64,000 nucleotides of DNA from Asterias rubens (lineage: Eukaryota), in assembly GCF_902459465.1 (NCBI RefSeq), contig NC_047066.1, forward strand, positions 1,178,001 to 1,242,000, given 5' to 3'. Position 1 is the stretch's first letter. Every line of letters starts with the position of its first letter. The notes under the pieces are model-generated. The model did not search any database, was not told where the DNA came from, and saw only the letters and a list, made by a program, of their open reading frames with translations. Positions 13,482-42,604 of this stretch are shown here, piece after piece. A program made the translations under genes and the position numbers.

Positions 13482-16138
13482 ATGGCTTGCAATGGACGAC
13501 TGAAGCTGTCAGACGTATGGCTGATACATAAAGAGCCGAGGCTTTTCGCTACTTCCCAGGTATGTTGATGATAGTCACGAGTAGACTTGGAGGCCTGTGT
13601 TATGATATAGGGTTTAGGCGCAGACTAAGTGCGGTTGGGTGTGACCTTGGTTCTTGTACATGGGTTACATGCTGGGTTGTATTGGCTACATCTCTGCCAT
13701 TTCCCTCTTTGAGGGACTGGGCAAGTTTACGAATCTGGTTTTGATTCAGATGATGGTTTGATACAGATACCTCTCTTCTCCAGTAATTCGTGTTGTGATA
13801 ATTATTGGTGACTATAACGAAAAAAAAGGAACCACTCGAAGATAGGGGCTGGTTTATTAGGGGCCCATATTGGTCTAAATATTTCACAACCTACAGATGA
13901 AAGTAATATCCTTCATTGACTTCCTCGTTTCGTTTCCATTATTATGAGACACTAAAACCATTTTTATGTTGCGTTTCAAATCAACAAAAAGAAAGACTAA
14001 AATGTGCCTAAAAAATAAAAGAATTAATGATCGTAAGCATAATGTCAAGGTGTAGTTGAAGAATGAAGTAATATTAACGTGAAAAGGAGTAATCATCATA
14101 CTTTCTAGTAACTTAGATACTAATTATTTAAAGAAATATACGGACATTTCTGCCATCGATATACACGACAAGAAAAACATTCCATGGTTGCTTCCCTTCA
14201 ACTAGTTATACAAATTGATAACCAGCCATGAGTCACATTGTGACAAATTGCAACGCATAGCATATAAATTCTAACGAAATATTTGTTTTATTTCAGTGGC
14301 CTCTACACCCGTTCATCTTTTTAGCCTACCGTATATTCTTAGCACTTTACCTTCTAGTGTGGTTGCTCCTTCACATATCAAGGACTAGCCCCTTTGGTGG
14401 GTTCTTCGTCTTTCTGACCAACTGGACCTTCACCGTGCTAACAATATACGCCGTGTCGTCTTGCATTGGTGCAGTCTACTTCACTCTTCGCACAAGGAAT
14501 CATCGTGACGGTATGTTGAAATTCAGGTGCTTGAGTGAGGGGACTTAGAAGGTACCTCCAATGTTCAAATATTTTAATCGATTTCCTCGATTCCTTTTTT
14601 TGCATCCCTATATGGAGACATCTTTTGTTCTTTCCATCGTCCATGTTCTTACAGTTTCCGATAGACTGCGTACACAAAATCCCTTGTGCAGCACCCCAGT
14701 CTTTAGAGTTTCCCTAATGGAGTCCTTTATTTACTTTCCCTTTACATGGGAGCAGAAGTACCTCCCCTATCCTCTAAAGAATTTCTGAAATTCCCAGCAC
14801 ACAATCAAGTTTGATGTGTTCTGGGAATTTCAGAAATTCCCACAACACAATAAAGTTTAATGTGTTCTGGGAATTTCAGAAATTCTGAGGACACAGTTAA
14901 TTGGTCTGGTGCCACTGCGCCACAAAACAAGCACCAAGTGTGACATGGTGTAGGCCTAATCCCCCTAACATTGGGTGCGTTCGTTTAGCTTCCCTGGGTC
15001 TACCCCGCGGTGCTCACTCGGGTGAGCCCCTGACAAGAGCTAAACGAACGATCACACTCGCCCTCTCGTGGTGACGGCATGCAACTCAGGTCACCCCCAA
15101 GTGACCCACTCCAGAAGCAGGGCACTGTGGGCTGACCCAGGTGAGCCCGTCAAAGCTATTCGAACGTACCGGGGCAGACCGGGGTGACCCAGGGAAGCTA
15201 AACGAACGCACCCATTATTGTGTCTCCATTGCGTTCTTGGAATCTCAGGGATTCATTTTAGAGGATTCTAGGGGTATGGTGTTTTTGTACACGATGGGAG
15301 CATGGGGGGGGGGGGGGGGGAGCTCTGCCACGTATCTGATCTGTAATTGTACATTGAATAATTGTTAAATCGTTGTTTGATTTGCGGTTATATATTTTGT
15401 TGACATAAGGCCTATGGGCCAACTTTGTCAAAAGTTTGTTTATGGCATGCCTATAATCTAAGTTGAAATAGTTTTTTTTAATGAAAACACATCCTTTTCA
15501 CTTTCTTTGTCTTAGTATTCGACGCCCCAGATGAGAACGAATCCCAGCAACTTCTACCCAACAACAGCCAAACCACCGAAGATGAGCCCTCCTCCACCGA
15601 CGAATCTACTACCGACTATATCGGCGCTATGCCACCCCTTCAAGACCCAAGGCCCGCCGCTCCAAGTTTCCCTCACTACTTCAAATTCTCTTGGCTCTTA
15701 TTTAACATCTGTCTTGCCGTCAATCCAATAGTGACTGTGATATTTTGGGTGTTCCTCGCCGATCCAATATCAAACCCCTTGAGTAGTGCAATCAATGTCC
15801 ACCTCCACGCCTTAAACACAGTCTTTATCTACTTGGATCTGTTCATATCTGCCACACCCGTTCGGTTCATCCATTTCGTCTATGCTATTCTATACGGCCT
15901 CATGTACACCACATTCACGTTAATCTACTATTGGGCTGGAGGTCTTAATCCTATAAGCGGAGAGACTGGTATTTATCCGCATATTTTGGATTGGGCTAAT
16001 CCTGGATTTACTATGTTGTCTATTTTCGCGGTTATCATCATCGTTCCGTTGACTCACTTAGCTGGATGGGGATGTTTTAGAATCCGGGGTTTGAGTTATG
16101 TGCGTTTCTTTGCTGCACCACGGAACCAGTTGAACTAA
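13482..16138 (+). CDS. rost: Rolling stone-like multipass membrane protein 1 (FAR-17a/AIG1-related); exons 13482-13559, 14297-14510, 15516-16138; 304 aa
   Basis: Exon 1 MACNGRLKLSDVWLIHKEPRLFATSQ|GT. Exon 2 has AYRIFLALY and FLTNWT. Exon 3 has VTVIFW, HALN and DLFISATPVRFIHFVY. Phases 0 and 1 join in frame (78+214+623 = 915 nt). Confidence 0.88.
14973..15213. mobile_element. MITE with perfect 28-bp TIR and 3-bp TSD (PIF/Harbinger-like)
   Basis: ATT-GGGTGCGTTCGTTTAGCTTCCCTGGGTC...GACCCAGGGAAGCTAAACGAACGCACCC-ATT, in rost-1 intron 2. Confidence 0.8.
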
Positions 16139-16991
16139 CACAATTAATATTAGTTGTGCCTTAGCAGACCTTTATCATGGTGCGGACATCTTTTATTTCT
16201 CCCTTTTAAATCAATGTAACAATGCAAACTGAGGCTGGAAAAAAAAGTAGTCTGGTTCTTTTTTTGTACAATGAATATTAGCATCCATTTACTGTTATCG
16301 GATACAAGAAACATGACCGACATAACGGCAGCGTGATAGTTCTAAAGCAAAATATGTCTAGGCTCTAAGTAATGCAGGCCTCTTGCAATAAGCGCAAAAT
16401 GAGCAGGGCACCAGTCGCAACAATTTATAAAACTTTTGAATTTTGCTGGACGCTGGAAACTTTGTCTCATTGAACATAATACAATAATTGCTGTGCAATT
16501 TTTTTGTTTTATCTAATTTGTTACTGGCACTTGCCAGTTTGCCCTTTTAATGTATAAAAAATAAATTGTAATTCTTAATGTTTGTTTGTAATTTTTAAAC
16601 ATTTCGATTTTTTATGAATCTCTGTATTTTAAACTCAATTCAGCTTGTAGCTGCGATGTTTGAATGTGTTTTAATAAACCAATAATAATAATAATAATAA
16701 CTAAGTACACTAGTCATGATGCTAGTTTGAATGACTAATGACATCCATTCTCATGCTGTGACATCGTGACATAGTCACATAACATTAACCGATCCAAATG
16801 AACGTCCATCTCTACCACAGCTACATCTTAGTCTCCTGCTCAATGACATTGTTTTTTTAGCAATTCTTTTTCTCTCCATCAGATGGAAGACCATTATTTT
16901 TTTCGAGCCTACGTTTTCGTTACCTGGATTAGAATGGAAGGAAATACAAATGCTCCGGTAATACAATGCAAATACTTGTGTTTTTTGTCCG

Positions 16992-17166
16992 AGTATTATT
17001 AGAAGATAGACAACTATTGAAAACCAATTATTCAGTCATCATCACCCCCAATCTATGCCACACCTTCTACGATGCCCAAGTATTATTAGAAGATAGACAA
17101 CTATTGAAAACCAATTATTCAGTCATCATCACCCCCAATCTATGCCACACCTTCTACGATGCCCAA
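16992..17166. repeat. Perfect tandem duplication, 2 x 87 bp
   Basis: agtattattagaagatagac...ttctacgatgccca at 16992 and 17079. Confidence 0.95.
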
Positions 17167-17488
17167 CCCTTAAAAAACAGTGCCGCCTGGAAGACCTGAT
17201 GGCAGCAGAACGAGAAGGATGTGAGATGTGCCCAATCCTGGGGAAACATTTGTAGAGAAGATGATGGACTCGGAAGAAGAAGAAGTCAATTCGGATCCAC
17301 ACTTGAAAAACATGCAATAACCACCGTGATTATAGGATGGCGGTTTTCCATAGTGGTTAGACCAGAACCTAGTTTTATTATTAATGAGAAAATAGAGTAG
17401 TCTGTTGTAAACCGCTAACCAACCAAAATTACCTAATATAAATGCAAAAAGGTGCCCGACGTGTCGACCTCTGTAGAGTCTTGAAGGC

Positions 17489-17874
17489 TTAAAGGTGGAC
17501 ACTATTGGTAATTACTCAAAATAATTATTAGCATAAAACATTTTTTGGTGACGAGTAATGGGGAGGGGTTGATGGTATAAAGCATTGTGAGAAACGGCTC
17601 CTTCTGAAGTGCCATAGTTTTCGAGAAAGAAGTAATTTTCCACGAGTTTTATTTCGAGACCTCAAGTTTAGAACTTGAGGTCTCGAAATCAACCATCTAA
17701 ACGCACACAACTTCGCGTGATAAGGTGTTTTTTTTCTTTCATTATTATCTCGCAAGTTCGACGACCGATTGAGCTAAAATTTTTACATGTTTGTTATTTT
17801 TTTATGTATATGTTGAGATAAAAAACTGTAAAGGCTAGTCTTTGACAATTACCAATAGCGTCCACTGCCTTTAA
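17489..17874. mobile_element. TTAA MITE family A copy
   Basis: ttaaaggtggacactattggtaattactc...ttaccaatagcgtccactgcctttaa. Confidence 0.82.
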
Positions 17875-18487
17875 TCAGAGAAAGGACTCTTCTAGGGTCA
17901 AAATGTAAACCTTTTTTTTTTTTTTTTGGGGGGGGGGGGGTGGTATTATAATTAGGCATAACCAATAATTATAGTTCCGCCTTTTCCTTTATTGTTATTT
18001 TCATGTATGTGTATTATTTTTCGTTATTTGCTTTTGAACATGTTTATGAAAATAATGATTACGTTTCAATCAAAGCCCGACCTATTGTCGATTTAGTAAT
18101 TAAAAAAAAATATATAAAAAACCACATCAACCATACCTATATAGGCCTGCCATGCAAATGTTGTTCATAATTATACCCCCCACAAATGCTGGGTCAGCCT
18201 TGACCTAAAAAGAGACATTAATAGGGAGTTTGATGTGTCATACCTTTTTGTGCAATGTTTTTTATTTTTCCAAAGCCCATTACTTGATCAGGGAAACTGT
18301 TGTTTGACTTTCAGACACGAGAGGGCGGTATTTTTTTATTATGGCTGCGCACTCGAACAGTGTTTATTTCGCAAACGTAACTTTACAGATTCTTCGACAT
18401 GTAGCAACTCAATGCTAGTAGTTTGGTTGAAACCTTGCCCACAGTGAAGTGCTTCTACCGTGAACAACTGCTGTACATACATTTACA

Positions 18488-21400
18488 ATGGAATGTTGTT
18501 GTCGATGTCGTCGACCCAAATTATCTGATCTTGGATTCAGCACAGCTGATTGCACAGTGTTTCATAGGCCGCAGGTTTGTACACATAAAATGAAGTTGTT
18601 TGTTATTGACTGTTCTGCGTCGCATCCACTAATGGTAGTAGTACTATCCTCCGCTTACCAGTTTTCACGCTATTATGCCTTTTTCTTTGAATTGGGAAAA
18701 TAATAATGATGCCATATATCAACCGATGCCCTAATTATCTTCATTTGTTAATATGAAGTATGCAAACATATATTACAACTTGATGGACATTGAAATGTTC
18801 ACACCACACACCTATCTTCAATGACTTCAACTGGCCCCATTTGTTTTGTGTTTCTAAGTTTTGGTCAAGGGAGTGGAGACTCTTTGCTTGGCAAATAAAA
18901 CCACACAATTTTTATCTATAAGGGACTGTTTACATCGCGCACAGAGAGGTAAAAGATTTGCCATGATCTTAGGGACACCTCGAAAACAGGACCTCCTACG
19001 ATACAACTTGGTAGTGATCTCCGACTCTGAATGCACAGTTGACAAAGTATCCTATTCCTACCTATGGACTCAAACGTTGTTAGGAAAAAGACTATCAAAT
19101 TGTTTTGAACAAAATAATGTTCATTTTTTTTAATCTCAGGTCTGGATCGCCTTGGTTAGAATAGATTGATTAGATATTGATGATTTTTCGCTTTTTGGTT
19201 ATCCACAAAAGCCTGTTCTCTGTAATTTTTAGTGTTATTTCTATGTTTGTACTCTTTGCCTGGAAATATATGAATAAATACAATAAATAGATTGACTACA
19301 TTTGGGTTGGAGTCGAGGTAGGGACTGAAAACCCAATCCACATGCAAATTACAAGGCTCTGGTCCGGGGAATCAAACTAAGGTCAACAGTGATGAAAGGC
19401 AGGGACATAAGGAAAAGCCGCACCACTGATCTTACATGACTGCTCTTGCCTTGGTAATATAATAGTAAAACTTCTTGACATACTATGTTTGGACAAAGAC
19501 TGAAAGAGTATCTATAGACTCAACAAATATTGTTCATCGATCAGGCCTAGACTGGTATTATGCAGAGGTTACCCATGGGCAATGACCTCTGTTCCCCTGA
19601 TCTTGGCCTTTGTGCCCCATCAAATGTGCCTTTTACAAAATAAAAACGGCTTTGCCACCTCGCCGATGAACTCCATGCCTGGTGTATTCACAATGGTTTA
19701 TGCTGACGTCTCTGCACACTTACTAATTGGTTTTATTACCTTTAATTTCAAACAGTGGTCAAAGTGTCCCCAGATAGCGTTTGCTGTGTACAGAGTGGTC
19801 TTAGCTCTGTACGTTACTGGGTTTCTCCTGGGGGTGATAGTGATCTCCGTCCAGCATCAAGGAGCGGAATCCTTCATCTATCTTACAACCTATGGATTCA
19901 TTATATTTGCTGCTTATAACACTGTTGCAGCATTCAACGTCATACTGGATGGATGCATTCGACGTCATAACCCATCACAAGGTGAGACTTGTGAGGAGGA
20001 AGAAATCCTCATTTTCAAACATTATTTCACTTCATGTATATTCTGGTTGTGAAGCATGACTCTCAGAAATGCAAACTTGATCACTGTACCAATAATCCCC
20101 ATAGTGAGAAGACAAGGAAGGAAGTTTAAGTGTTATTGTAAGTAGGAGGAAATCCTAGAGAATTATTCTAGGGAAAACCCCTGCAGCCAGGACTGAAAAC
20201 CCACTATACATACATGTAGTGCCCCCGGCGCGAATCAAACCAGGGTCTAGAGCCTAGAGGTGAACGGTAATAAAAGATACTACTACTAACCACAACCCAA
20301 CCGCCTGAAACACTTTGTTGGTAATTGTTGCCAGGCTTTTAAGAAACAGCATGAACCTTTACATGTTGGTTGTGTATGTCCATATTGGATTATTGAATGA
20401 AACTGTTGCATCATGGAGGAAGGAAAACTAACCATAAAGTAAAATAAGAGTGATTCACCAGCCAAAAAGCCAATCCTCGCTTGGCCATAGCTTTGTACAC
20501 CTCTGGATCAGTTGTTTTTATACACAACCATCCATCACCAGTTAAAGGGAAGGTACACGTTTGGTAATTACTCAGAACAAATATTAACTTAAAAACTGAC
20601 TTGGTAACGAGAATTGGATAACTGTTGATAGTATAAAACATTGTGAGAATTGGCTCCCTATGAAGTAGCTTAGATTTTGAGAAAGAGGTTATTTCTCACT
20701 AAAATTAAGACTTCTAGCTTGAAAGCACTGAAAGCACACAAATTCATCCAAAAAACCTGTGTTGTTTCTGTCACTATTCTCCTGCAACGTCAATGACCAT
20801 TTTACATGGAGCTCACATGTTCACAGGTCTGTTTTTTCATGCTTTTGTTGGGATACACCAAGTGAGAAGACTGGTCTTTGACAATTACCAAAATGTGTAC
20901 CTTCCCTTTAAGCATGTACACTCGTAGCAGTAGCCCACCTTCTTGGGTTGTTTATGGCTCTCTTTTAAAATCAATCTTATTATGAATAAGACTAAAGTTA
21001 AAATAGAGCCATAACAGCCCTACAAAAAACGCTACTACAGTCGACTGTCGTCATAACACGACAGCTGGGACTGGCCAAATCCCTTTGTTTTATATTTTTT
21101 TAAATAGGAACGTTTTTATAAAATGACAGCAGAACAAAGACACAAAAGCAGAAATGAGCTTTGGGACTTTAGAATTGGACTCTTTATAACTGCTCTTTAT
21201 GAGTGATGACTGTACTTGTAAATTGTTTCGGATGATGAAGCAGTAGACTGCACAATATACAAGATACAAAGATTAAAGCACAAAATAGTAAACTCAATGT
21301 GTTACAGTAGTGTCTACTTCCCACTATGCAATGTTATAAATCCTGCATAAATTTTGTTTTACTTTTGCTTCAACTTTCTTGTGTTGTTTTGTTTACAGGG

Positions 21401-21922
21401 AGCTCTCGTTTCAACCACCAGCTACATTGGTTCCTATTTAACCTCACAACAAACATCAACTTCTTAGTAACCATCGTCTACTGGGGTCTCATCTATACCC
21501 CAGGATTCCTCCCTCTCGTCTATGATCTCAACATGCACACCCTAACCTCTGTAATCTGCCTTCTGGATCTCTTCCTGACAGCCCTCCCTGTGAACCTTCT
21601 ACACTTCATCTACCCTTTCCTGGTAGGTGTAGGGTACATCATCTTCACCCTGGTCTATTGGGCAATCAATCCAAACGATGACCCTATATACCCGTTTCTG
21701 GACTACACTAACAACCCCGGCCTAGCTGCGGGAGCCGTCATCGGGTCTTCTATGGTTGTTGTCATAATGCAAGGCATCATTTGGCTGATGTATAAGTTAA
21801 GACAGTGGATATGGATAAGATGTGGTTACAGTTGGATGGGGAGGGATTCTTCTGGCGAGGACTGTTGCTTTCTTGATGATCAAGGATCTGGAAATGAAGA
21901 GGTTACAACTGGACAGGTTTAA
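18488..21922 (+). CDS. rost: Rolling stone-like protein 2; exons 18488-18574, 19756-19981, 21399-21922; 278 aa
   Basis: MECCCRCRRPKLSDLG...RPQ|GT; AVYRVVLALY and YLTTYG; VTIVYW, HTLT and DLFLTALPVNLLHFIYP. Canonical GT-AG; 87+226+524 = 837 nt, in frame. Confidence 0.9.
20542..20911. mobile_element. TTAA MITE subfamily B copy (rost-2 intron 2)
   Basis: ttaaagggaaggtacacgtttggtaatt...aattaccaaaatgtgtaccttccctttaa; TTAA on both sides. Confidence 0.82.
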
Positions 21923-23710
21923 TTAAAGGTGCCCCTTAAAAAATATAATATAGTATATACAGTTTGATGATGAGTGATTCCACTGGAGAGGATTCTGCTG
22001 TATTTGTGGGGACCAGGCAATGACAAATGTACAAATCGACAATATACATGTTGACAAGCAGCAATATAATCCTCCCAAATCTCGTTGGTAAGCCTCACCT
22101 TGAGTTAGTAAAAGCTGAAGCGATATTTAACCATCAATCTTTGACTGAGAGCAGAAAAGGTTGATTTGAATTGTAAGCTTGATATTCGTTGGAGATATTT
22201 TGTCTGTGTAATTTGTATTTTAATATAAAATATTGCAGAATTGCATTATAGTTTTACCTCTTGATCATGACTTAAATTTGATATTTATATTTTTGTTTGC
22301 AAATCGCACAAACACAAGGCCAAATGGCCACGCATGGTGCGAGAGCTACAAGTAAAGAAAAGTTAAAGGAAATGAAAATTTCTGTTCACTTTCTGAGGTG
22401 AATGCATCTATATTCAATGCACAGTTCCACCATGCACGACCCTGGCAGAAATGTCATTATAAGAGGACAGCAAAACAAAGAAACACAAAGCAGAAATGAG
22501 ATTAAGTACTTCAGAGTAAAAAAACCGAAACTCTTTATCTTAATAACATTCTCCTTATACTGAGGGTTCACTGAAACGGTTCCAGACAAGTATCCAGTTT
22601 CATAAACTTCCAGTTTCAGAAAACATTGCTTACAAAAAACGCGATACGCAAAAATGAGCAGGATACCAACCACATGATACATGTGATATTGTATTTTGTT
22701 TGATATTCTTATAACTTTTGTTGTGCTAAGATTTCCTTTTTCCTTTCTTGCATAATCAGCTCCATTATTATGGACCCAAGAGGGTGATGAACTTTGGAAA
22801 GAGGGTTGAAAATATTATCAGAATTTTGTAAAGTTTCAATTTTCTCGTGATAAAATTGCCTAACTAGTTAAAACCATGCAACTGCACTGGTTGTCTTTGA
22901 TGGTATATTCGTACTGTGACATGCATTCACCACATGTTGTAAATTGAAGGCTGGTAAGGTTTACTTTATTTATCTCACTGTTGAGTTTTGCAATAAATAA
23001 CTGAGTATACTTTTCCATGTCTAAGTGATGTTCAAACTTATTGTTAAAGACACTGGACACTATTGGTAATTGTCAAAGACTAGTCTTCTCACTTGGTGTA
23101 TCCAAACATAAGCATACAATAACAACACGTTGAACACTTGGACTCAAATGGTCATCGAAGTTGTAAAAGAATAATGAAAAGACTAGCTTCTAGGGTATGT
23201 GCGCTATACGAATCAAGTTATATTATACAAAACCACAAAATACCAAGTACATAAATTCTTCAAAATCTTAAGTGAGTGGTATTAATTTTAAAAATTAAGA
23301 GTAAAATGCCTGTGATTTTTTCCACAGGACTCGGGAAAGTACTGAGTATACAATGCTACACACATCGGTGTATATGGGTAAAAACCAAAAATTAATATTC
23401 TTTATCCCCGATGCAAATTTAACATCTATTGAGTGGTATTAATTTGCTTTAAAAGATAATTAACAATGTGTTACGATCTGGCTGTAGTAGGTGATCTTGT
23501 CGACGTTTTGTATGCATATTTTGATTTGAAAACAAACAAGGGATTGGGGCATAAATCATAAGTGAAAATCTCAGGGAAAATAGAAGAATCTCAGATGAAA
23601 ATACCTTCCATACAAATATACAATAATTGGCGGTCGAGTTCTGGTGGCTAGTCATCAAGCACAGATGAGTTCCAGCACAGGCCGCACCCCCAGTCACTTG
23701 TTCGTATTGC

Positions 23711-25066: not shown

Positions 25067-28000
25067 ATGGCGGGGCAATGTTGTGGACGCCCCAAGCTGT
25101 CCGATTTCGGACTCAACACCGATGACCCAAGTGTGTTTTCCCGTGCTCAGGTAAGATTGTCACCGATGTGGTCACTGTTTGGAACTATAAACAACGCAAT
25201 TTTAACAACGCTCATTGGATCCTTGGATTTATTCGATGTTTGGAACTATAAACAACGCAATTTTAACAACGCTCATTGGATCCTTGGATTTATTCGATTG
25301 TGGAATCAAATGACTTGCGTTTTAGAAGAAGTGCTTTGTAGGTCATGAACCATTTTAGATAAAAGTAATTTTTAAAAGGAAAATATTTGGGTCGAACCGT
25401 CACCGTTGGCCTTTATATATGCGGTATTGTGGCCACTCATAGGGGTGCACTGATTGGTTTGGGTGTCTATATACAAACAAATTTACCCAAACCAAATAGT
25501 GACAATTATGTCCACCATATCTCAAAATGGCTTATTGTACCATGGAGCTATACCCAGTTGAACCGTCCCCATTATAGCTCATGAAAACAGTTTTTGGCCG
25601 GGAGAATAATCAAGAGATACATGTGGGGAGGTTTGTAAAAACATAAGAAATATTAACATTTGGGGTGCACCCCACAATGTTTTGTAAATGGAAAAAATTA
25701 AACAATGGGATCACAACACCTCGGGAAAGCCCACAATGTTGCTCTATAACTAAACATGTTAGCACCATCGATCAGTATTGGCCCATCGATCGACCTATAG
25801 TCAAGTTGTCTCGGTCAATGGAGTATACAGGACAGTCCTATAATCTCTGCTTAGCCTAAACATTTCCATACTTCAATCATGACTCACAGTTCTTTGAGTA
25901 ATTTTTTGTTGTTGAAAACACCCAAACGAAAAAATCTTGGTCACAATTTGTCTTCATTCCACATTGAGTGTAACTATGGGAAACTCGTGCGTCACTGACT
26001 TTTTTTACCAAAAGTCTTACCAACTATAGACAACCGAGGTTATCTGGTAGCTAGAGGCAGTTCGAATCCATGTTTTGGCAGCGGGTACCGCAACGATAGA
26101 ATAGATGTTAAATTATCGGGGATAAAGAATATTAATTTTGTTTTTTACCCATACACCGATGTGTGTTAGCACCGTATACTCAGTACAGTGCTAACACACA
26201 TCGGTGTATGGGTAAAAACCGAAATTTCATCCCCGATGCAATTTTAACATCTATTCTTTGCAGAAGTAGTTTACTAATTGTTCTTGATGTAGGCTTTTTT
26301 AGAACTTGGTTATCTTCATATACATGAATCCTTTATTAACTTGATATGATGTCAGTCTGCCTTGAAGCTTGAATGACCCAAATTTAGCTGCAAGTGACGT
26401 GTTAAAACAGGCAGGAGTAATGTCTAAATTACACCATTTCAAACCTTTAACTATGGTTCACCATTTCAATGACGACAGCTATATATAAGCCTAAGCCTAA
26501 TGTGTGGACTGCCAAAGAAACAGGGGCAAATCTTTTGCACAGTTTGATCGTGATTATAAATCGCAAAATCAAGGCCTCTTCAGCCTCTTTCCAACCACTC
26601 CAGAAAACGGCCTACAGTAACCACGGCCTTGGGATGTTCCTAAGTTTCGACACAGATCATACTATTTTGTCTAACCCAATTATTTATAGGCTTACCCTAA
26701 CCTTAACCCCAACCCTAACCCCTAACCCCAACCCGTACCACAACCCTAACCCCCAACCCTAACCCCCAACCCTAACCCCATACCCTTACCCCACCCCTAA
26801 CCCTTACCACAACCATTACCCCAGCCCCAACCCTAACCCCAAAACTGTTTTCGGTACAGGGTTGCCCGAATAATATATAGAGGTGACAGAATAAAGATCA
26901 GAGATCCCCAAGGAATGCACATTCATTGAGTGACAAACCCTAACAATCAACCCAGCTCTAAAATTAGGTCTGCGTCCCAGTTCGTATAATTATTTTGACA
27001 AGAGTCGGCCATCATGCAATACATTGCGCTTGAAACAGTGTTTTGGGATATCCTGTCCTATGAACACACAATATAGAGGTCACGGTCAGGTAGTCAGGTA
27101 CCACCCATTTTAACAATAGACCTATTGAAAATGTGGGTTATGTAAAGGGAACTGACCCATAGCAATTGTATTATCAGCATGTTATTTACACGCAGCTTTG
27201 TTTGTCCTTGTACACAAAATCAAATTTAATTTTTAATAAAGAAGGAACTCAACAATAATTTTGATAACAACATTACGCAAACTAAAGAATCACCTGAAAC
27301 GCACGGCTAAAAAGCAAATGCATTCAAAACTAAACCTTATTAGTATAAACCGTTATTTTTTGATGTTGTAAAATAAATTAACGGGAATTTTGTTTTATGT
27401 TCTTGTTATTGTTGAAATGTTTCAACAGTTTGCCTCCATTTCGTCTCCTTGCCTGCCATGTTGGCAATAGTAATAATACAACATAGACGCAGTTCAGTCT
27501 TCATGTTTCATGTTTAATAATCACACATCACGATGAAACAACAAACCTTTGGGATATGGGAAATGTGAGCTTAATTTTGGTTGTAACAAACTAAATCAAC
27601 TATTGAGTTTTCCAGGTTTGCAGATTCATTTTTCTCGAGTATGTCTTCATTTTGAGGGATATTTAATTGAACTAGGCCTATTATATTCTCCTCCTTCCCT
27701 TAGCTACCAGACTAAAATCCTTTACCAATTCTGTATAATGATTCCAACGCCCTTTTGTGTATGTTTACTTTTACGGTGTATTATTTACTTTTTTGTTGAT
27801 GTTTACATTTGACAGTATGAGAAGATTCCTAAGATATTGTTCATCATCTACCGTGTGGTCATCGCTCTCTACATCTTCGGTATCACTGTGGCGTATCTGA
27901 TCAACCAAATCGAATTCTTTGGCGGGGTTTTGTTCGTATATCTGACCAACCTCGGATTCTTTGTCTTCTTCTTTTATCTTGTAATGGCTGCTGTAACGGC

Positions 28001-29860
28001 CGTAGCAGATACATGGATTTTACGGACCCGAACTATTGAAGGTAGGTTTATTTTGTCCCCCCATTATATTAATCATAATTCGCTTACAGTGCTATGCACA
28101 GAACAGAACTGGGAAACTGGGCCCGGTGCGTGCCAATAGACCTTTGTCATGATCGATATCTCCATCTTGGTCATGTTCCTCATACCAAATAACAATAATT
28201 TATGATAATAATCAATTGGCAAATAGGAACCAGACTATTTTGTTCTTTCAGCCTCGGTTTGGTTACATTGATATCAATGGGAGAAATTCAAGATGGCTGC
28301 ACCATGATAATTATAAAGGTCTATTGTACCGAGTAACTAAATTTTCTTACCGAGCCACGCCCCACGACATTAGCAGATTAAGGAGAATGGACGAGAAAGT
28401 GGCCTAGATTCGTGGATAGAATATACGAGCCGGATTGTGTAATTCTACAGCGTCTTAAAGACCTATGTATTATTAAGTGAATTTTATTGCAATAATGTGC
28501 GCCCTCTGATTGGTTATTAGCCCATTGCAGGAAGCATACCTATGTCATAGGGAAGTCTTTCCCCGAAGAGTTTGTCCCCGTGAAAAACTGGGCTGATAAA
28601 GGAGGATGATTCAAAAGAGGGCGCTATCAAAAAGTATCTTTACACATTTCACCGTACGGGGAACAGAATTTCACGGGGTGGTATTAGGTACAAAATAGCC
28701 ATACACCATGATGTACATTGACCATCAGAAAATAATTTTGTTTAATTTATACCACATCTATGGCCCAATTTCATAGAGCTGTTTAAGCAGGAAACATTGT
28801 TTAGCAGAAATGAACAGGATACCAGTCACAAATTGTACATGCGACATATTAATTGGCAGGTAACCTTATTCCGGTAAGCATATGTGTTGTGCTTAGCTAC
28901 TTTTTGTGCCCTATAATTTCATTAATATTGGTAAAGCAGTTATACAAGACAGTGGACTTTATTGGTTATTGTCAAAGACCAGTCTTCTCACTAGGTGTAT
29001 CTCAACATATGCATAAAATAACAAACCTGTGAAAATTTTAGCTCAATCAGTCATCGAAGTTGCGAGATAATAATGAAAGAAAAAACACCCTTGTCACACG
29101 AAGTCGTGTGCTTTCAGATGCTTGATTTCGAAACTTCAAATTCTAAACTCTTGAGGTCTCGAAATCAAACTCATGGAAAATTACTTCATTCTCGAAAACT
29201 ACGTTACTTCAGAGGGAGCCGTTTCTCACTATGTTTCATACTATCAACCTGTCCCCATTACTCGTTGCCAAGAAAGTTGTTATGCTAATATATATTTTGA
29301 GACCAATAGTGTCCACTGCCTTTAAGAATCAACTAAATCACCATTTTGTCTTTGTTTTCTTGCTACACCCAGAAGTTGGAATTCGCCACAAGATCCAATG
29401 TTTACTCTTCAATATCACATTGAATGTTAACATCATCGTCACTCTCATCTACTGGAGCTTTCTGTACGATCCAAGTGTCTCATTCTTCTATGACTTTCAC
29501 GTGCATTCATTCACCACCATCGTTTCCCTTCTCGATTTGTTCCTGACTGCCATGCCGGTACGGTTCCTGCACTTAATCTACCCGATGGGATTTGGTATCG
29601 CGTACCTGATAATGACTCTGATCTACTGGGGAGCAGGTGGGGTGACCAGACTAGGGGACTACATCTATTCGTTCATTAATTATACCGAAAGCCCAGGGCT
29701 TGCTGCTGGGGTGGCTTGTGGTGTACTTATAGGTGTGGTTCTCGTTCAGCTGTTAGTCTGGGGCTTGTACAAGCTACGAATGTGGATGTGGGTTAGGTGT
29801 AGTGGGGATGGGAGGATCGTTCAGTCGGAGGACCCAGGCAAGATGGAGGAAGGGTTGTAA
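25067..29860 (+). CDS. rost: Rolling stone-like protein 3; exons 25067-25150, 27816-28041, 29373-29860; 265 aa
   Basis: MAGQCCGRPKLSDFG...RAQ|GTAAG; IIYRVVIALY and YLTNLG; VTLIYW, HSFT and DLFLTAMPVRFLHLIYP. 84+226+488 = 798 nt, in frame. Confidence 0.9.
25176..25297. repeat. Perfect tandem duplication, 2 x 61 bp
   Basis: tgtttggaactataaacaacgc...ggatttattcga at 25176 and 25237. Confidence 0.95.
26695..26840. repeat. Degenerate (CCCTAA)n telomere-like tract
   Basis: ccctaaccttaaccccaaccctaacccctaacccc...ccctaacccc, inside rost-3 intron 1. Confidence 0.85.
28948..29325. mobile_element. TTAA MITE family A copy just upstream of rost-3 exon 3
   Basis: gacagtggactttattgg...ccaatagtgtccactgcctttaa. 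It explains the spurious N-terminus of ORF 29231. Confidence 0.8.
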
Positions 29861-32437: not shown

Positions 32438-33373
32438 TTAAAGGCAGTGGACACTATTGGTAATCTAATCATCAAAATAATTATTAGCATAAAACCTTAC
32501 TTGGTAACAAGTAATTGGGAGAGGTTGGTAGTATAAAACATTGTGAGAAACGGCTCCCTTTTAAGTGGAGTAGTTTTCGAGAATGAAGTAATTTTTCACG
32601 AATTTGATTTCGAGATCAAGCATCTGAACGCACACAACTCCGCGTGACAAGGGTGTTTTTTATTTCATTATTATCTCGCAACTTCGACGACTGATTGAGC
32701 TCAAATCTTTACAGGTTTGTTATTTTATGCATGTGTTGAGATACACCAAGTGAGTAGATAGTGTCCAGTCCAATGTCGTTAAATGATGCACAAACACAAT
32801 ACAATGTAACAACAGTTATCTGCGTGGTGCTATTTGAAACACTGCTTCTTTTAAAAACATTTGACACCTTTGGTAATATTGTCAAAGACCAGTCTTCTCA
32901 CTTGGTGTATCTCAACATAAGCATAAAATAACAAATCTGTGAACATTTGAGCTCAATTGGTCGCCAAAGTTGCTGGACACTGGACACTATTGGTAATTGT
33001 CAAAGACCAGTCTTCTCACTTGGTGTATCTCAACATAAGCATAAAATAACAAATCTGTGAACGTTTGAGCTCAATTGGTCGTCGAAGTTGCGAGATAATA
33101 ATGAAATAAAAGACACCCTTGTCACAAGAAGTTGTGTGCTTTCAGATGCTTGATTTCGGGATCTCAAAATCTAATCATGAGGTCTCGAAATCAAATTCAA
33201 ATAAAATATGTTAGTGAGAAATTACTTCTTTCTCGAAAACTACGTTACTTCAGAGGGAGCAGTTTCTCACAATGTTTTATACTATCAACAGCTCCACATT
33301 ACTCGTTACCAAGTAAGTTTTTATGCTAACAATTATTTTGAGTAATTACCGAAAGTGCCTACTGTGCCTTTAA
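32438..33373. mobile_element. Cluster of family A MITEs immediately 3' of the PTCHD3-like stop (32438-32775; 32855-32975 partial; 32976-33373)
   Basis: Three family A segments. The ~110-bp block gtcaaagaccagtcttctcacttggtgtatctcaacataagc... is repeated in tandem at ~32881 and ~33000. Confidence 0.78.
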
Positions 33374-33406
33374 TAAATGGATGACAAGTTTTATAAAAAT
33401 CATGTC

Positions 33407-36400
33407 CTACATAGATTTGGTGAACGTGTGCTGAGGCATTTCGATTACGTCATTTCTAGTGTCAGGCAACACGCTAAATGGATAACCTTCGCCGCCAGTT
33501 TTATCGACGCTTTCTGGTTCTTTTCGGATCTTTGCTGGGATTAAGAGCATCAGAAAGACTGGGATGAAGAGGATCCCATGCAAGGTACCTAATGAAATCA
33601 CTAGAAACATTGTCTTGAAGAATGTCCGGAAGATGTAAGTGTCTGAGAAGGCGAGGATTAAGATGCCTAGAATAGTGGAGAGGGATCCCTGCACGATTGG
33701 CATACCGAGGGAGTAGAGGGCGTGGATGGCGTTCTCACGACGTGAGCCTTGATTCCCTGATACGTAGGCGTAGCTAATGTGTGCGGAGAAGTCCACACTG
33801 AAACCTATGCAGATAATGAGGTTTGTCATGGAGATGTTATCGAGGTTCACATCCCAGTGGGTCATGAACCCAATCACCCCAGTCACGATGGATGTTAGGG
33901 AAAGAGTGACGAGGATAGAACAGATTGGGTTTGGGATCATCAGCAGAGAAACAATCAACATGGCGCCTACGGCGATACCAAGGTTCTGCATCGTGTTCGG
34001 GAAGATGGCGATAAACTGATCGAAGAAAATGAAGGTAGGATGGTAGACAATGGCTGGGAGCTCAGAACCTTCGGCTATGGTTCTCAAATCTGTCATCATG
34101 GTGCTCTCTTTAGTTGTGGAATCCAAGTCTTTGGTGGTAACAAAAAATCTGGAAATCTCGATACTTAGGCCATCGTCACTGAAAACGATGTCAGGGGAGT
34201 ACCGTTCAAAGGCGGGGAGTTTGAGGAAATGATTCCGTAGAGTATCTACAAACTGGGCTTGGGTTGGATCCCTCAGGTCAATCAATTCAAGGTAGGCTCG
34301 GTAATCACGAAGCCAAGATACAGAAAGACCCTCAGTTTTGTTGTAGACATATTCACTGTCCTCAATACTAACTAAGGTTGTCTCCATTATATCTTGAATG
34401 CTTGGGTGCCACATATCTCTGGGCTCAGTGAACATTAATGCAATTTGTGGACCGTAGGACGTAAAGTAAGCACGGGCGTCGTCTTTATAGTTGGCCGCGT
34501 AAGAGTTATCCCGTGCAAGATTCCGTAGGCTCAGACCCATTTGAAGCTGTGTGCATCCATACATGGCGGTAGCCAAGTACCCAGCGTACAGCACGACAGT
34601 GAACACCGCCATCAACGGTCTTGTGATGAAAGGCCCGTAGTACTTCTTGAAGAATATCATCAAGGCATGATCATTGGTCTCTTCGACGCTGATGACAGAA
34701 CGGTCCTTGGATGCACCACCTGCGCAAAATAAGGTGTATGCCTTAGACCCTGACTCCTCCTTAGATCGCACCTTATTACACGACAAGCAGTGTCTGTTAG
34801 CTGCCTCCCGCCTACCAGTCAGCACCATGCACGCACCGAAGAATGTTAGCTGATACAGGTAGTCAACCAGCACTGCTGACCCCAAATACAAGCAGAAAAT
34901 GCGTACGGACTGGAAGTAGGTAATGGTCCCAACTCCAAATGCCAACGCGTCAGTTACGGACGTGATCGTGATGGACATAGCGGCCTCTGAGAAGGCTTCG
35001 CGCATGCGTCCTTCTACTGAAAGTCTAGTGTCAGTTTTTCGCCAAGCAGCAACCATGATGAACATGTCATCCACACCAATACCTGCAAAGTTAAAGCAAA
35101 GGTCAGTTTAACATTACATTAACTTCATGCTTGTATATTTTCTTAAATCCTCGAGTGCGTAAGAATCACGTGACGTTGTAGAACCTTGGCATTTGAGATC
35201 TAAATATACTAGCAAGATACAGAGGAATAAACTTAGCAACTCATTTGTGAATAATTATAATTTTCGATTAATAATTGGGCATGGATAGTGGCAAAGGTTC
35301 CGAGTAGGGGATGCCATCACTTTCAGCCCACTCTTGATACAACACCGATTGTGACCAGAGGTAGCTCTATTAATTCTCACTTCCTTATTCTGCTATAGAA
35401 CAACCTTTACTTAAATGATGTTTGAAGCTTTGCAAGGTGTGAATGATAAGAGTTAAATGCAGTGGACACTATTGGTAATTACTCAAAATAATCATTTGCG
35501 TAAAACCTTTCTTAGTGACGAGTAATGAGGAGAGGTTGATGGTGTTAAACATTGTGAGAAATGGCTCCCTCTGAAGTGACATAGTTTTCGATTTCGAAAA
35601 AGAAGTAATTTTCCACGAATTTGATTTCAAGACCTCGAGTTTAGAACTTGAGGTCTCGAAATCAACTATCTAAACGCACATAACTTCGTGTGACAAGGGT
35701 ATTTTTTCTTTCATTATTATCTCGCAAGTTCGATGACCGATTGAGCTCAAATTTTCACAGGTTTGTTTTTTATGCATATGTTGAGATACACCAACTGTGA
35801 AGGCTAGTCTTTGACAGTTACCAATAGTGTCCACTGCCTTTAACTACATTAATAATAGTAAACTTGCGGGTACAACCATGTATTAAATCTCATTTGAGGG
35901 AGTGTTGGCTCTGAAAAGAGCCAGTTTGGTCTCGACGTTTCGAACTGTATACATGTACTCTGCTCGTCTTAAGGAGAAAAGTGTGAAACTTTGACTTACC
36001 AAGGATAAGGAAAGGCGCAGCGCCAACAATGTTGGCGTAAGGTACACCGATGTAGCTCATGAGACCGAACGAAGATACCAGCGATAAGCACGCTGATAAG
36101 ACGCCACATGCAGCTAGGCACGGCTTGCTCCTAACCCAGTCAAACATCATACAACTCAAGATGGTGAAAAATATGAAGACAGAAAAGGTGATCGAGAAAT
36201 CCCTGATAAGGTTGGCACTAGCTGCTGTCAGCTCATCTTCAAGAGACGTAGAGACGAAACGGGTTACTTGTATCCCAGCTGGCTTGAATGCAGATACGAC
36301 GTCAATGAAGATCTTTTCCCACATTGCTCCCCGAAGATCGTCTGCTGTCTCCTCATATAGTAAGAGGTAAGACAGCAGGACAGCTTCTCCCGACAGTACC

Positions 36401-36987
36401 TCATCAGAGGAGCTAGAATTGAAGGTAACGCCTCCAAGTCCTCCGCCAAGAAAGAAAACTGTGTCTGCAGTTGGTCTGTGAAGAGGGTAGGTGAGAGTGG
36501 TCACCGGAACATTCGACGAGTTATACCCGTACACAGCCAGCAGAGCATTCTCGTTGCATACACCATCTATCTTGATACAAAGATCAAGAAACGTGTACTC
36601 AGTGTCATTTTGAAAGACGCTAATGTTCATGATCATATCGTGTAGATTTATCATTTCTTGAACTGCACTTTCGGTCAGGACGTTCCCGCCATTTTCCATC
36701 CGAATGATAGCGTTGCCATACCGTGTCACACTTCCAGCCAACGGGTCGTCCTTACCGTTCTGAGCGAATAGATTTTCCACCGTTGCCCGATCCGTTTTGG
36801 CCTGACCGTTCTCCGGAGTGTATAACGCCTCTACGTTCTGTTCCTCGGTCAAGAAAACGATACCAGCTCCAAGTGCTCCTGCTAAAAGCACGGGCAAAAT
36901 TAAGAAGGGAAACGGATGCCTGGCGATGAAGCCTCCATAATTGAAAAAACATAACCTTATAGCCTTTTCAATGCAATCGAACGCCAT
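33407..36987 (-). CDS. PTCHD3: Patched domain-containing protein (PTCHD3-like; RND-fold, sterol-sensing domain); exons 36987-36000 and 35082-33407; 887 aa
   Basis: N-terminal IARHPFPFLILPVLL and LYTPENG...DR. The phase-1 splice rebuilds the SSD motif PFLILG|IGVDDMFIM. The second half carries GFSVDFSAHISYAY and TFFKTMFLVISLGTLHGILFIPV. 988+1676 = 2664 nt, in frame. Family-level call; exact orthology untested. Confidence 0.92.
35453..35843. mobile_element. TTAA MITE family A copy in the PTCHD3-like intron
   Basis: Same TIRs and interior (cattgtgagaaatggctccctctgaag...cacaggtttg) in opposite orientation to 48053; TTAA at both ends. Confidence 0.85.
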
Positions 36988-39306
36988 GATGTTATTCAGC
37001 AAAGTTTGCACGCACAACAAAAGTTATCCAGTTTGTGTGGGGCCTTATTACACGCTCAATGAAGCTATTTACTTTATTGGGATGCTTCAGTTGGTGTGAG
37101 TAAAAAAATAAGCTATGCTGCTATTATGTTGTTTTAGGTTGGTTTCCGCTGCAATACCTAACATTATAAACATGACACAAAACAACACAATATTCCAGTT
37201 GTGACTGATTGTATGATCGTGTCAAAATGAACTGTCGCCTTCTACAGAGGCCGCTGGTGTCCAGAGTGCCTTGATCACACTCCACCGACTTCATAAACTT
37301 CTCTATGACTATTCAAAACTAGGTAGGACACGGGTCAGTAGGACAAAGGAATTCCTTGAAATTCTATAATTATTATTGATCGTATACGACCATGACGTCA
37401 ATCCAAATCCATCGAAAAAGCATTTTGTATGGACAAGGTCGCCACTCATCGTCATCGACCTTCAAATACCAACACTACCAAGGTCTTGTTGACGGCTACT
37501 GTGGTTTGGAAAAGTTCATGCAGTCTTTATAGAAGAACGAGGTTAAAAATTCACATCACTGAGAAATCAATTATTGCGAGACAATCACATAAAGCATACG
37601 TTGTTATCACTCACACTCTCACTCTATCCCGTAGCTAAATGCCGTACGGGGTACACCCCACCAGACTAACAGGGAGTCGAGCTCAATACACTTTTGTATA
37701 CAAACAGGCCATAAAATATCATACATTATTGACAGATTTTTGGCATATAAAAACGTAATAACAAGTTATGGTATTTTACCATAACATACCATAACTGGTA
37801 AAAAGTTTTTACATGCAAAATGATTGTCGTCTCACTGACGGACTGAGACAAAATTCATTACATTGTTTTACTAATTTCTCAAAAACTACAGCACCTCATC
37901 AAGTAACATTTTAAGGGAAGCTTCCTAACTGATACCATCAGTATCTTCAAATATGTAGATTGAAGTCATGGCCTAGTAAAATTCTACCTCATACATGTAA
38001 TACAAAGTTTGCAGCCCACAAGACTTATTTTAACTTGTTATTATCTTTTCATTCATAAATACCTCAGACAGCTCCGCTATTCTTATTGGTGGAGAGCGCG
38101 TCACGTGGGGAGTTTAAACGGTTGATAATGACCAGCTGGACTCTGTTTATAACCGGTTAGTCTTGGTGCAAAACGTTTCTTGTTACGGTCGATGCAGGCG
38201 CCACTATGCCCTATGCCTCTGCCTAGTGCCTCTATGCCCTGTAAGATCATGTCATATTATTGATTAACTTACAAACTGAGATGGTTGACATGGACCATCG
38301 AGTGAAAACCCACAAGAAACAGGTAAAACCACGGAGCCTTCCTCCATGATAAAACACCTATATCGTTTAGCATCAAATTCAACATGTTCTGCAAACTTTC
38401 AATTGAATGGAATACCTACAATGATTGGTTGTTTGTGGTTCCTACCAATTCAACTATGTTTGAATATTTAGTGTGACATCGTCAGAGTCTGTTTTTTGTT
38501 ATGGCTCAATCCATAGTTTTTGTCAGTGATTTAATCAACATTCCATTTTGTGATGTTAACGTTGGATGTATAGGGGCCTACCCCACTCTTCAAAAAGAGT
38601 AACATGGTACCTAGGGATTAGTCAATATAGCGGTTCCAGCATCACGGCTCTAGCGTTGTCCTCTCCGTTAATAATTAAACACTGTATTGTGTACAAAATC
38701 TGGTTATTGTGGAAAGTATAATGGCAGTTCAGCTGAATTACAAAGGCACATAAAGCTCATGTATGTTTTAAGTAGGGCACATAGATCATGCGAAGGTTAT
38801 TCCACAATAGGACGCCTAGCAAGTCAACATGAATTCACCGTGTTCACGTATCAGGCAACATCATGTCTTCTCATGCGTGAATACATCAACAACATCAAAC
38901 GTTGAAACATGACTTGCAAGCTACTCACATTCTTTACGGTGTAGCGGTTATCCTGCACCGAACAATACACCGCTCTTCTACATGATTTGTTACGTAGTGT
39001 AGCGAATCCTACGAAAAGGTTACATAAAAGGCATCCTCATTGGTAGTTTTATTACGTACCATATACATTGATAGGTTGTGATAACGGTACTGACTACACC
39101 AATTATGTCCGAACTTTGTCAGCAATTCAAAGCTTGAACCTCGGACCCATGAGTTGAATAACTTCGCATGAACGTTCCGAGCATCGAGTCCAATTTGGGC
39201 CAATAATTGGTATACAATATTCAGGCAGAAGATAGCGTCAAGTGGTGAAAGACTACGTTACAAAACACGTCGTTGTATTAAAACAAGTTGACAGTTTGGT
39301 GTCAGT

Positions 39307-42300
39307 ATGGAGAGGTGTGCGGAATGTTGCAGCCGACCAAAGCTGTCTGATCTAGGATTCCAGGTGGAAGATTCCAGTGTATTTTATCGTCCGCAGGTAG
39401 GTTATACCATCGATGACTGACGTACAAGGTAGAATTGTACCTCCTTAGTCAGATAGCTCCATGGTCAGATCATTGAGTGGAAGGGTCAACAGGGCGAAGA
39501 CACACTCAGACCCGGTCTAATATATTAGAGATCTTTTATTGATCACCATTCAAATTATTCCGTTAAGAATGAATAAAACAGTTTGAGTGGATCGAATATC
39601 ACTCTACAGCAACCCTCTTCATGTTGGCCATCGATTCACAATGAGGAACCAAAAGATTATTCGCTTGTGACACTTGTCGCCGCAAGGTTTTTGAAGATGG
39701 TGACACTAACACAAAATTCAACTGCTACTTAGGTATAGATATGACCAGACCTGGTGTATGATTCATTTTTGAAAGGGCAATGGCACAAACAAGGCATTTT
39801 CTCCTTGGTTAAGGGTACCCTATAGAATTACTATATTAACAGCAGCATTTTAAGGACACCAAGGTAATGGCCAGGGGCGGGGAGGATCGCATTTGTTGCC
39901 TTTGTGTGGTATACAGTGCCTATTTCCCTGAAAAGGTATCACTTTCACAAAAGTTTTACTATTGAACCGATCCGAATTAATAAGTAGAACAAGCTGCTAT
40001 ATTGGCAGTTACTCAGAATAATTGTTAGCATAAAACCTTACTTGAAACAATTAAGCAATGAAGAGCTGTTGACAGGTATAGCACATTGTGAGGAATGGCT
40101 CCCTTTGAACTAACGTAGTTTTCGAGAAAGAAGTAATTTTCCACTGAAATATTTGAATTTGATTGCGAGACCTCAGAATTAGATTTTGAGGTCCCGAAAT
40201 CAAGCATCTGAAAGCACACAACTTCGTGTGACAATGTTTTTTTTCTTCCATTATTATCTGGCAATTTCAAAGACCAATTGAGTTCAAATTTTCACAGGTT
40301 TGTTATTTTGTGCATGTGTTGAGATACACCAAGTGAGAAGACAGAGCTTCTTAGGCTTATTATTTATTTCTCATTGCTTTGTACATGTATTGTTAATATT
40401 TAAATGCTTGTTATTTTGTTGTAAAGCGTTGTTGTACTTTTTTTGTGTAAGAACGCTATATAAATGCTTAGATTATTATTGTAACTGCAACAAAACATTC
40501 GCAAAATCTGATTATTTTGAAAGTAGACGATAGCAAACGTTATACGATTGCTAGTTCGCATGAAGACATGTTTAGCAGTTTCATTTTGTGTTTTATCAAT
40601 GCATTTTAAAAGAGCATTGCTCAAAATGAGGCCTAGAAGACAACGACACTCAAAGGGATGTATCAAGGAAAATTAAATTACGGGAGAGAAGATGTATGTG
40701 CATTTCTCTTGAACTGGAAAGATTGTGAGATGGTGAAAATAAGATACAGGGAGTTCCAAAGTGAAGCATTGTGAAGAAAAAATGGCAGAATAGTAGGCAC
40801 CTGGCCATTGGAACAGAAACGGTGAAGGGATGCGACCATAACGCACTGTACAAAACCTTCCCGGTTGAACTTGACCCGGATCAGGCTCCCGTTAGGCCTG
40901 AACCACTTCTGAGTCAGTGTGACCCGAAAGCTGTGTGACCCGAAAGCTGTGTCAAAATTACATTGTATAATGGTCAAAGTGACCCAGAATCCCATTTGAA
41001 AATCCAATTGTTAATCCCTTCCGGGTCAGCTTGACCCAGGAATTGGTCAGGTCCACTGATGGGATCCGGAGTCCGGGGTTACCTCTGACCCAAATAAAGG
41101 TGCACACACAAGGGATACATTTACGTGAAAATGTTATGTATTACAGGCCTTAGACTAGATAGAGAATGGACAAAACATCGAACAGAGAGAGGTTCTAGTG
41201 ATTCATGATGCCAGGTCTGGTCACCGAATACTAATTAATATAGCTCACCAGTGGACTGTGAAGATCAATGTTTTACGAAGTGCTATTTTTTTACACTGTA
41301 TTATTTTGTTTATCCATTTCCACAGTGGAGTAAGATCCCTTGGTTTGTATTTGTCATCTACCGTGTGGTCTTAGCGCTCTACTTTCTTGGCTACTACCTT
41401 GGCGACTCGATTCAGCAAGGAGAAACATTCAGTTGGAGATCGTTCCTCTATCTAACAACCCTGGCATTCATTGTCTTCATCATCTACCTCGTCATGGCTG
41501 CTGTGGTGGCGTTCCTTGATGGGTTTATTTCACGGAAAAGAAGTATTCCAGGTAGGCAAATTTAAGTCCGGAAATTAAAGTTGTATTAGCATTGTTTGAT
41601 GTATGGTGGCCTCTGTTTGGGTTGGGTGTAAACAGATAAATTACCCAAACCAAAATAATGTTGTAGTAAACACATGCAGTTGCTTGGAGTCGATGCAAAT
41701 AGGGACGCGACGGACAGGGCCAAGTGGAACCGAAGGGAGAAAGCAGGTCAACCCAGAACAGACTGCATGAACAACGGCCTTAAAACTGACATGCTGATAT
41801 CCACCTTAACTCAAAATGGCTGCTACGTTCGGTGGGCACTCTACAAATTAATGGCATCACAACCACCTGTTTATGTCTGAAGACTTGAGGACAAGTCTTT
41901 GAATGCTTTTCGCGATGATTGCGTATAGCTGAGCTCTCACGCGAGACTTGCTGTTCTTACTGCTGCCCCTTTACGCGACTTTAGCTCCTGTGACTATACG
42001 GTACCAGAGTCGGGAGCGGAGCTGGAAGTCGGAAGTCTCGCGAGAGCAGAGTGATCGCGTGAAAGCTGTGACTGCCACAAGTGTGCTAACGGCTTGACCT
42101 CAAGTTTATTTTGTTTTCCTCTAAACACATGCAGGTATGAGAATACGACACAAGCTCCAATGGTTTCTTTTCAACACAACGTTCAGCGTGAATGTTATAG
42201 TCGTTGTAACCTACTGGGCAGTTTTGTATTCTCCATCTGAAAACTTCCCCGTCTTTAACAACATCAACGTGCACCTGTTAACCGCCGTAATATCACTACT

Positions 42301-42604
42301 CGACTTGCTACTCACAGCCACTCCGGTACGGTACCTGCACGTCATCTACCCGATTCTCTTTGGATTATCCTATCTGGCTATCACCTTGATAAACTGGGCT
42401 GCAGGTGGTGACGTCATCTATTTTATTCTGGATTACAGCAATTACCCTGGACTGGCTGCGGGTACAATTATCGGTGTGATTACAGGTGTTTTTATAATCC
42501 ACGGTGTAGTGTGGGGCCTCTATAAACTCAGAATGTGGATTTGGGGAAGATTTGGGAACATTGAAATTGTGGACGACGAGATTAAGATTGAGGAAGCCCT
42601 TTAA
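39307..42604 (+). CDS. rost: Rolling stone-like protein 4; exons 39307-39396, 41326-41551, 42135-42604; 261 aa
   Basis: MERCAECCSRPKLSDLG...RPQ|GT (exon missed by the ORF track); VIYRVVLALY and YLTTLA; VVVTYW, HLLT and DLLLTATPVRYLHVIYP. 90+226+470 = 786 nt, in frame. Confidence 0.9.
40000..40345. mobile_element. Family A MITE copy lacking clean termini (rost-4 intron 1)
   Basis: ttactcagaataattgttagcataaaacc...gagatacaccaagtgagaagac. Confidence 0.7.

Follow-up and report, generated by a model that had tools for sequence, protein, structure and literature searches.

Gene structure, expression and history of the array

The DNA analyzed here is a 64-kb window of the genome of the starfish Asterias rubens (assembly GCF_902459465.1, contig NC_047066.1, positions 1,178,001–1,242,000; coordinates below count from the first base of the window). 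Its plus strand carries four rolling stone-like genes, referred to as g1 to g4, and the present account concerns these genes and the putative function of the membrane proteins they encode. Rebuilt from the sequence, all four are intact and consist of three coding exons each: g1 at 13482–13559, 14297–14510 and 15516–16138 (exons of 78, 214 and 623 nt; 304 amino acids), g2 at 18488–18574, 19756–19981 and 21399–21922 (87, 226 and 524 nt; 278 amino acids), g3 at 25067–25150, 27816–28041 and 29373–29860 (84, 226 and 488 nt; 265 amino acids), and g4 at 39307–39396, 41326–41551 and 42135–42604 (90, 226 and 470 nt; 261 amino acids). The short first exons were located via a common peptide, RPKLSD. Every intron is bordered by GT..AG, with intron 1 in phase 0 and intron 2 in phase 1, and none of the four models contains an internal stop. 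The initial annotation of the locus, made from the sequence alone, had described four paralogs on the same strand with three exons, phases 0 and 1, and a second exon of exactly 226 nt in three of them; the rebuilt models agree with this in all respects, exon 2 of g1 being the one of 214 nt. Pairwise identity among the four proteins is 30–53%, with g1 the most divergent (30–38% to the others), and no fifth copy was detected in the window by tblastn.

The genes are already known and publicly annotated as "rolling stone-like" with the Pfam family Rost. The annotation of LR699096.1 (assembly GCA_902459465.3) lists products of 304, 278, 265 and 261 amino acids that match the spans of g1 to g4, and the g4 product starts at the same base as our model. 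The g3 protein is letter-identical to the database protein P0002, "protein rolling stone-like [Asterias rubens]", and g2 to the database protein P0006.

At least two of the four paralogs (g1 and g2) are transcribed. RNA contigs of 1600 and 1547 nt (runs X1 and X9) connect exons 1 to 3 of g1 with 0 mismatches and continue to position 16614 as 3' untranslated region, while contigs of 1.4–1.5 kb (X1, X8 and X9) and one of 302 nt (X2) cover exon 1 of g2 and exit at its donor site, position 18574. Lack of expression, named in the initial annotation as an outcome that would speak against its interpretation, is not observed for g1, with its fully spliced contigs, or for g2, whose exon-1 donor is spliced.

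Maximum-likelihood analysis places g1 next to two Patiria proteins (99/98), apart from the rest, and g2 to g4 within a starfish-only clade (93/92), in which g3 clusters with proteins of Patiria and Acanthaster (94/94). These two starfish also possess tandem Rost pairs with the same three-exon layout. Judged from sequence, the array is an ordinary and partly ancient tandem duplication, with g1 representing an old separate lineage and g2 to g4 being starfish-specific. The description of the genes as an "expanded" set is accurate insofar as tandem copies are present and g2 to g4 are specific to starfish, but the expansion is modest and g1 has to be set apart as a member of an older lineage.

Three features of the encoded proteins deserve mention. 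All four N-termini, encoded by exon 1, display a Cys cluster followed by R-x-K-L-S-D (e.g., MECCCRCRRPKLSDLGF in g2), which could serve as an S-acylation site. The g1 protein carries a 46-residue acidic, Ser/Thr-rich insertion (residues 98–143, ~15516–15655) in the loop that connects helix 2 to helix 3; this insertion is absent from g2 to g4 and also distinguishes g1 from Drosophila Rost. Residue 113 of g3 (exon 3, ~29399) is a Cys at a near-invariant position, where 98% of the Rost family, including g1, g2, g4 and the Acanthaster/Patiria relatives P0003 and P0004, have Trp; the Cys is specific to g3.

Rost family membership and the conserved Thr and His

All four proteins are members of the Rost family (PF21534, gathering score 26.8 bits). 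Exon 3 of each gene by itself scores above this threshold, with 68, 39.5, 51 and 46 bits for g1 to g4 (E = 1e-18 for g1, 5.6e-10 for g2 and 4.9e-12 for g4), and full-length g3 reaches 76.4 bits (E = 3.3e-21). Likewise, PF21534 is assigned to all four annotated products, and that of g4 additionally has a weak match to FAR-17a/AIG1 (PF04750, gathering score 24.5 bits). An exhaustive profile search retrieved 2041 representative clusters (50% identity) at E ≤ 0.001, the best 150 of which are all Rost-like; named clusters among the matches listed are "rolling stone" or "rolling stone-like" proteins of echinoderms, hemichordates, molluscs and insects. A word-indexed search with a profile of 110 sequences at E ≤ 1 returned Rost proteins alone and no AIG1 or ADTRP, and searches of NCBIfam yielded no match, the bacterial family "Pr6Pr" (a structural neighbor in the ESM Atlas) included. 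All 110 family representatives match Pfam Rost, and the sole other Pfam family found in more than two of them is FAR-17a/AIG1 (four members, best E = 4e-05).

The initial annotation had proposed that the array retains, despite strong divergence elsewhere, the catalytic Thr and His of the intramembrane lipid hydrolases AIG1 and ADTRP. The two residues are indeed present in the rebuilt models at the positions it gave: the Thr codons lie at 14417 (g1 Thr67, in FLTN), 19885 (g2 Thr73, YLTT), 27945 (g3 Thr72, YLTN) and 41455 (g4 Thr74, YLTT), the His codons at 15806 (g1 His195), 21536 (g2 His151), 29504 (g3 His148) and 42272 (g4 His152), and in each protein the His precedes an Asp by exactly 10 residues. 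We determined conservation in an alignment of 110 full-length Rost-family representatives (A2; 265 ranked columns, mean column identity 14%). At the Thr position, 94 sequences have Thr and nine have Ser (103/110), His is found in 106/110, and the position ten residues after it is acidic in 105/110 (77 Asp, 28 Glu). Among the 265 columns, that of the His ranks 3rd and that of the Thr 12th; in a family this divergent, conservation of both residues exceeds that expected by chance in the alignment, and their retention against a diverged background is borne out. However, since nearly all of the 110 representatives possess them, the Thr/His pair is, as far as the alignment goes, a trait of the whole Rost family and not a special feature of the A. 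rubens array.

In three representatives from other genomes (P0024, P0107 and P0144) the His is replaced by Tyr, and all three have lost Thr/Ser as well. For this joint loss Fisher p is 6e-4 (uncorrected for phylogeny), and the three members are only ~20% identical to each other. Because every member with Tyr in place of His also lacks Thr/Ser, the alignment suggests that the two residues work together, and the three proteins are candidate non-catalytic offshoots of the family. The conserved Asp ten residues after the His was also considered as a third catalytic residue, and was discarded: ten residues correspond to ~15 Å along the same helix, so that, by helix geometry, a direct contact with the His would be unlikely.

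Predicted fold and putative function

An AlphaFold2 model of g3, computed with alignment A2, has a mean predicted local distance difference test score (pLDDT) of 91 and a predicted template modeling score of 0.88. It consists of six long helices (residues 34–69, 71–95, 107–134, 141–161, 168–190 and 211–246). Thr72 opens helix 2, and His148, the sole invariant His of helix 4, is located in the first third of that helix. Applying the positive-inside rule to the sequence and the modeled helices, the termini and even-numbered loops would be cytoplasmic, which would put Thr72 and His148 both in the half of the membrane formed by the outer leaflet.

When the full g3 model was compared with the Swiss-Prot models using Foldseek, the top match was Rost of Drosophila melanogaster (O44252), a PF21534 member with six transmembrane helices (template modeling (TM) score 0.84/0.81, root-mean-square deviation 2.2 Å, 26% identity over 256 columns). 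The next tier (TM 0.55–0.71) comprises mammalian ADTRP (four species) and AIG1 (two species) together with UPF0641 proteins of Schizosaccharomyces pombe and yeast, and a third tier (TM ~0.5) is formed by homologs of MG452 and TMEM164 and by YwaF; the match that follows has a TM score of 0.23, and all others stay at or below 0.3. In the ESM Atlas, PF04750 is assigned to 38 of the 100 clusters closest to the protein in features; the structural TM score to a fungal FAR-17a/AIG1 cluster is 0.75, and one mollusc cluster bears both Pfam names. The predicted fold of g3 is the AIG1/ADTRP fold, which bears out the structural side of the initial annotation. Rost proteins differ from AIG1 and ADTRP by an extra N-terminal segment, which holds the Cys cluster and KLSD; fold alignments start at g3 residue 38.

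In ADTRP, residues T47 and H131, and in AIG1, T43 and H134, are essential for hydrolysis (PMC8123165). To place Thr72 relative to these residues, we searched Foldseek with a truncated g3 model (residues 68–250, pLDDT 94.7), in which Thr72 is fragment residue 5. The alignments pair fragment residue 2 with residue 44 of human, mouse and rat ADTRP, fragment residue 3 with residue 45 of hamster ADTRP, and fragment residue 2 with residue 40 of human and mouse AIG1 (TM 0.74–0.78, normalized by the fragment); given these starting points, and provided that the first three aligned residues are free of gaps, Thr72 falls on T47 or T43. In these modeled superpositions, g3 Thr72 accordingly occupies the structural position of the catalytic Thr in six of six Swiss-Prot entries. 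The His of g1 to g4 is probably the equivalent of the catalytic His, judging from its placement on helix 4, its invariance and its distance to the Thr, which amounts to 76–78 residues in g2 to g4, compared with 84 for ADTRP and 91 for AIG1 (residue numbers as in PMC8123165). Of the alignment to the catalytic residues that had been postulated, the Thr is thus matched residue by residue, and the His at the level of helix 4.

AIG1 and ADTRP form one branch of the ATGY superfamily, which also includes TMEM164, GPC1, YwaF and YpjA. Its members share a core of six helices, in which helix 2 bears a nucleophile that varies and helix 4 a His that does not (bioRxiv 10.1101/2022.07.06.498872); the g3 model likewise has six long helices, with Thr72 on the second and His148 on the fourth. 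Beyond Rost, AIG1/ADTRP and the yeast relatives, the only fold matches of g3 with a TM score of ~0.5 or more are TMEM164, YwaF and MG452. The nucleophile position of Rost is occupied by Thr or Ser, that of TMEM164 by Cys. Rolling stone is absent from the text of the paper on the superfamily (bioRxiv 10.1101/2022.07.06.498872), of which Rost would, on the basis of the models, be a further animal branch.

Taken together, we consider g1 to g4 to be four tandem, intact Rost paralogs with an AIG1/ADTRP-like fold that would function as Thr/His intramembrane lipid hydrolases, a property they would share with their entire family, and assign this interpretation a probability of roughly 0.55. Each protein crosses the membrane with six helices, and its predicted fold is that of the AIG1/ADTRP intramembrane lipid hydrolases; the Thr that opens helix 2 occupies the site of the catalytic Thr, and helix 4 carries the invariant His. 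The His would activate the Thr, which would attack the ester bond of a membrane lipid and form an acyl-enzyme, and water would then release the acyl group, as in AIG1 and ADTRP. Human AIG1 and ADTRP presumably have [FY]-[LM]-T around their Thr, as well as an acidic position at His+10 and, further downstream, R..H..YP; the latter two would lend weaker additional support to the equivalence of the His.

Several points weigh against this interpretation. The profile match to FAR-17a/AIG1, called for in the initial annotation, misses the Pfam threshold, with 15.6 bits (E = 0.012) for exon 3 of g2 and 14.4 bits (E = 0.026) for exon 3 of g4, i.e., 14–16 bits versus the 24.5 required, and no such match at all for full-length g3. 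Rost and AIG1/ADTRP are just 13–19% identical; they have in common the six-helix fold (TM 0.6–0.78), the aligned Thr72 and a His on helix 4 that is invariant. All structures compared are predictions. Searches of the PDB with the single sequence and with profiles gave chance matches only, Foldseek reached a maximum TM score of 0.31 there, and no solved structure in the PDB has the g3 fold. The equivalence of the His is established at the level of the helix rather than by residue alignment, and it is by helix assignment that Thr72 and His148 are placed near the same end of helices 2 and 4, which run in the same direction. Moreover, R41, W113, W131, P165, H170, Y181 and Y202 are near-invariant as well; with other columns equally conserved, a catalytic pair cannot be picked out by conservation alone. 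The mapping of RNA contigs covered g1 and g2. Finally, the ATGY superfamily also includes acyltransferases (bioRxiv 10.1101/2022.07.06.498872).

The alternative that survives best, which we still regard as unlikely, is that Rost proteins are non-catalytic membrane proteins, for instance structural or regulatory fusion factors, a role that has been proposed for Drosophila Rost, and that helix packing or lipid binding accounts for the retention of Thr and His. The many columns that are as conserved as the pair would fit such a role, as would the functional literature on Rost, which is confined to the myoblast-fusion phenotype of Drosophila Rost, described as a "potential transmembrane protein" (PMC2138187); the literature searched contains no paper that links rolling stone to FAR-17a or to the hydrolases AIG1 and ADTRP. 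The single paper found to mention both "rolling stone" and "AIG1" refers to the unrelated AIG1 GTPase domain. Three observations speak against a non-catalytic role: in six alignments Thr72 coincides with the Thr that two proven hydrolases use for catalysis, the almost sole replacement of this Thr is Ser, another nucleophile, and Thr and His were lost jointly in three deeply diverged members.

A second alternative, to which we give a smaller chance, accepts the enzymatic nature of the proteins but sees in them acyltransferases or transacylases like TMEM164 and GPC1, which would pass the acyl group from the Thr to a lipid acceptor instead of water. The ATGY fold serves hydrolases and acyltransferases with the same geometry of nucleophile and His (bioRxiv 10.1101/2022.07.06.498872), and TMEM164 homologs are among the fold matches of g3. 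However, AIG1 and ADTRP, which use Thr and hydrolyze, are closest in fold, in features and in the weak Pfam matches, whereas TMEM164 uses Cys and matches far worse (TM ~0.5 vs. 0.6–0.78). It is very improbable that the array is partly decaying, with some copies being unexpressed or pseudogenes that merely inherited the motif: Cys113 of g3, the divergence of g1 and the read evidence, which is confined to g1 and g2, could be taken as signs of this, but they are opposed by four intact frames with canonical splice sites, by fully spliced g1 contigs in two runs and use of the g2 exon-1 donor in four, and by the same three-exon layout in the Patiria and Acanthaster copies.

The hypothesis of Thr/His intramembrane lipid enzymes concerns the Rost family as a whole and not this array in particular, and in this form we find it credible. 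A relationship between Rost and AIG1 is already implicit in the databases, because automatic annotations mix both names for some proteins. More tentatively, and with somewhat less than even odds, the entire family would be an unrecognized animal branch of AIG1/ADTRP-type Thr/His lipid enzymes, the role of Rost in fusion would consist of lipid remodeling, and g1 would act on other substrates than g2 to g4. The notion of "sub-specialized" hydrolases among the paralogs, put forward in the initial annotation, is speculation. Drosophila Rost is known solely by its fusion phenotype (PMC2138187), while the starfish has several diverged tandem copies. A biochemical function would, if the interpretation is correct, become available for a family that is widespread in invertebrates (2041 clusters), and if Rost is active as a Thr/His hydrolase or transacylase, its role in myoblast fusion could be tested with one Thr-to-Ala mutant. 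For the locus itself the result is modest, as annotation of the genes exists and the Thr/His pair characterizes the family.

Neighboring genes and repeats

A gene with Patched and sterol-sensing domains is located on the minus strand between g3 and g4 (33407–37020), head-to-head with g4 at a distance of ~2.3 kb. Its annotated product has 887 amino acids, and the open reading frames (ORFs) at 33407–35074 and 35890–37020 match the Pfam families Patched and Sterol-sensing. A conserved linkage of Patched and Rost genes was considered and rejected, no Patched gene being found in the 10 kb around the Rost pairs of Patiria and of Acanthaster.

The window also contains a dispersed repeat of ~380 bp, represented at 17400–18000, of which at least 10 long copies (>290 bp) and additional fragments are present in both orientations with 72–91% identity. 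Copies lie near 4248, 11414, 20550, 23731, 28946, 32447, 32978, 35462, 40000 and 48053, so that the second introns of g2 and g3 also contain copies, in g3 immediately ahead of exon 3, and the depth of RNA contigs on this repeat is enormous. A second element of very high copy number, with short internal inverted repeats, occupies 14800–15400 in intron 2 of g1, where contig depth reaches up to ~200,000 in all four RNA runs.

Two plus-strand ORFs (2693–3223 and 6251–6814) flank an assembly gap at 4811–5153 and have in common a nearly identical stretch of ~80 residues, reflecting either local duplication or a repeat in the assembly. On the minus strand, an ORF at 59333–60133 encodes many head-to-tail units of 14 residues (SFLDRSIYKTIIMV), implying a tandem repeat of 42 nt.

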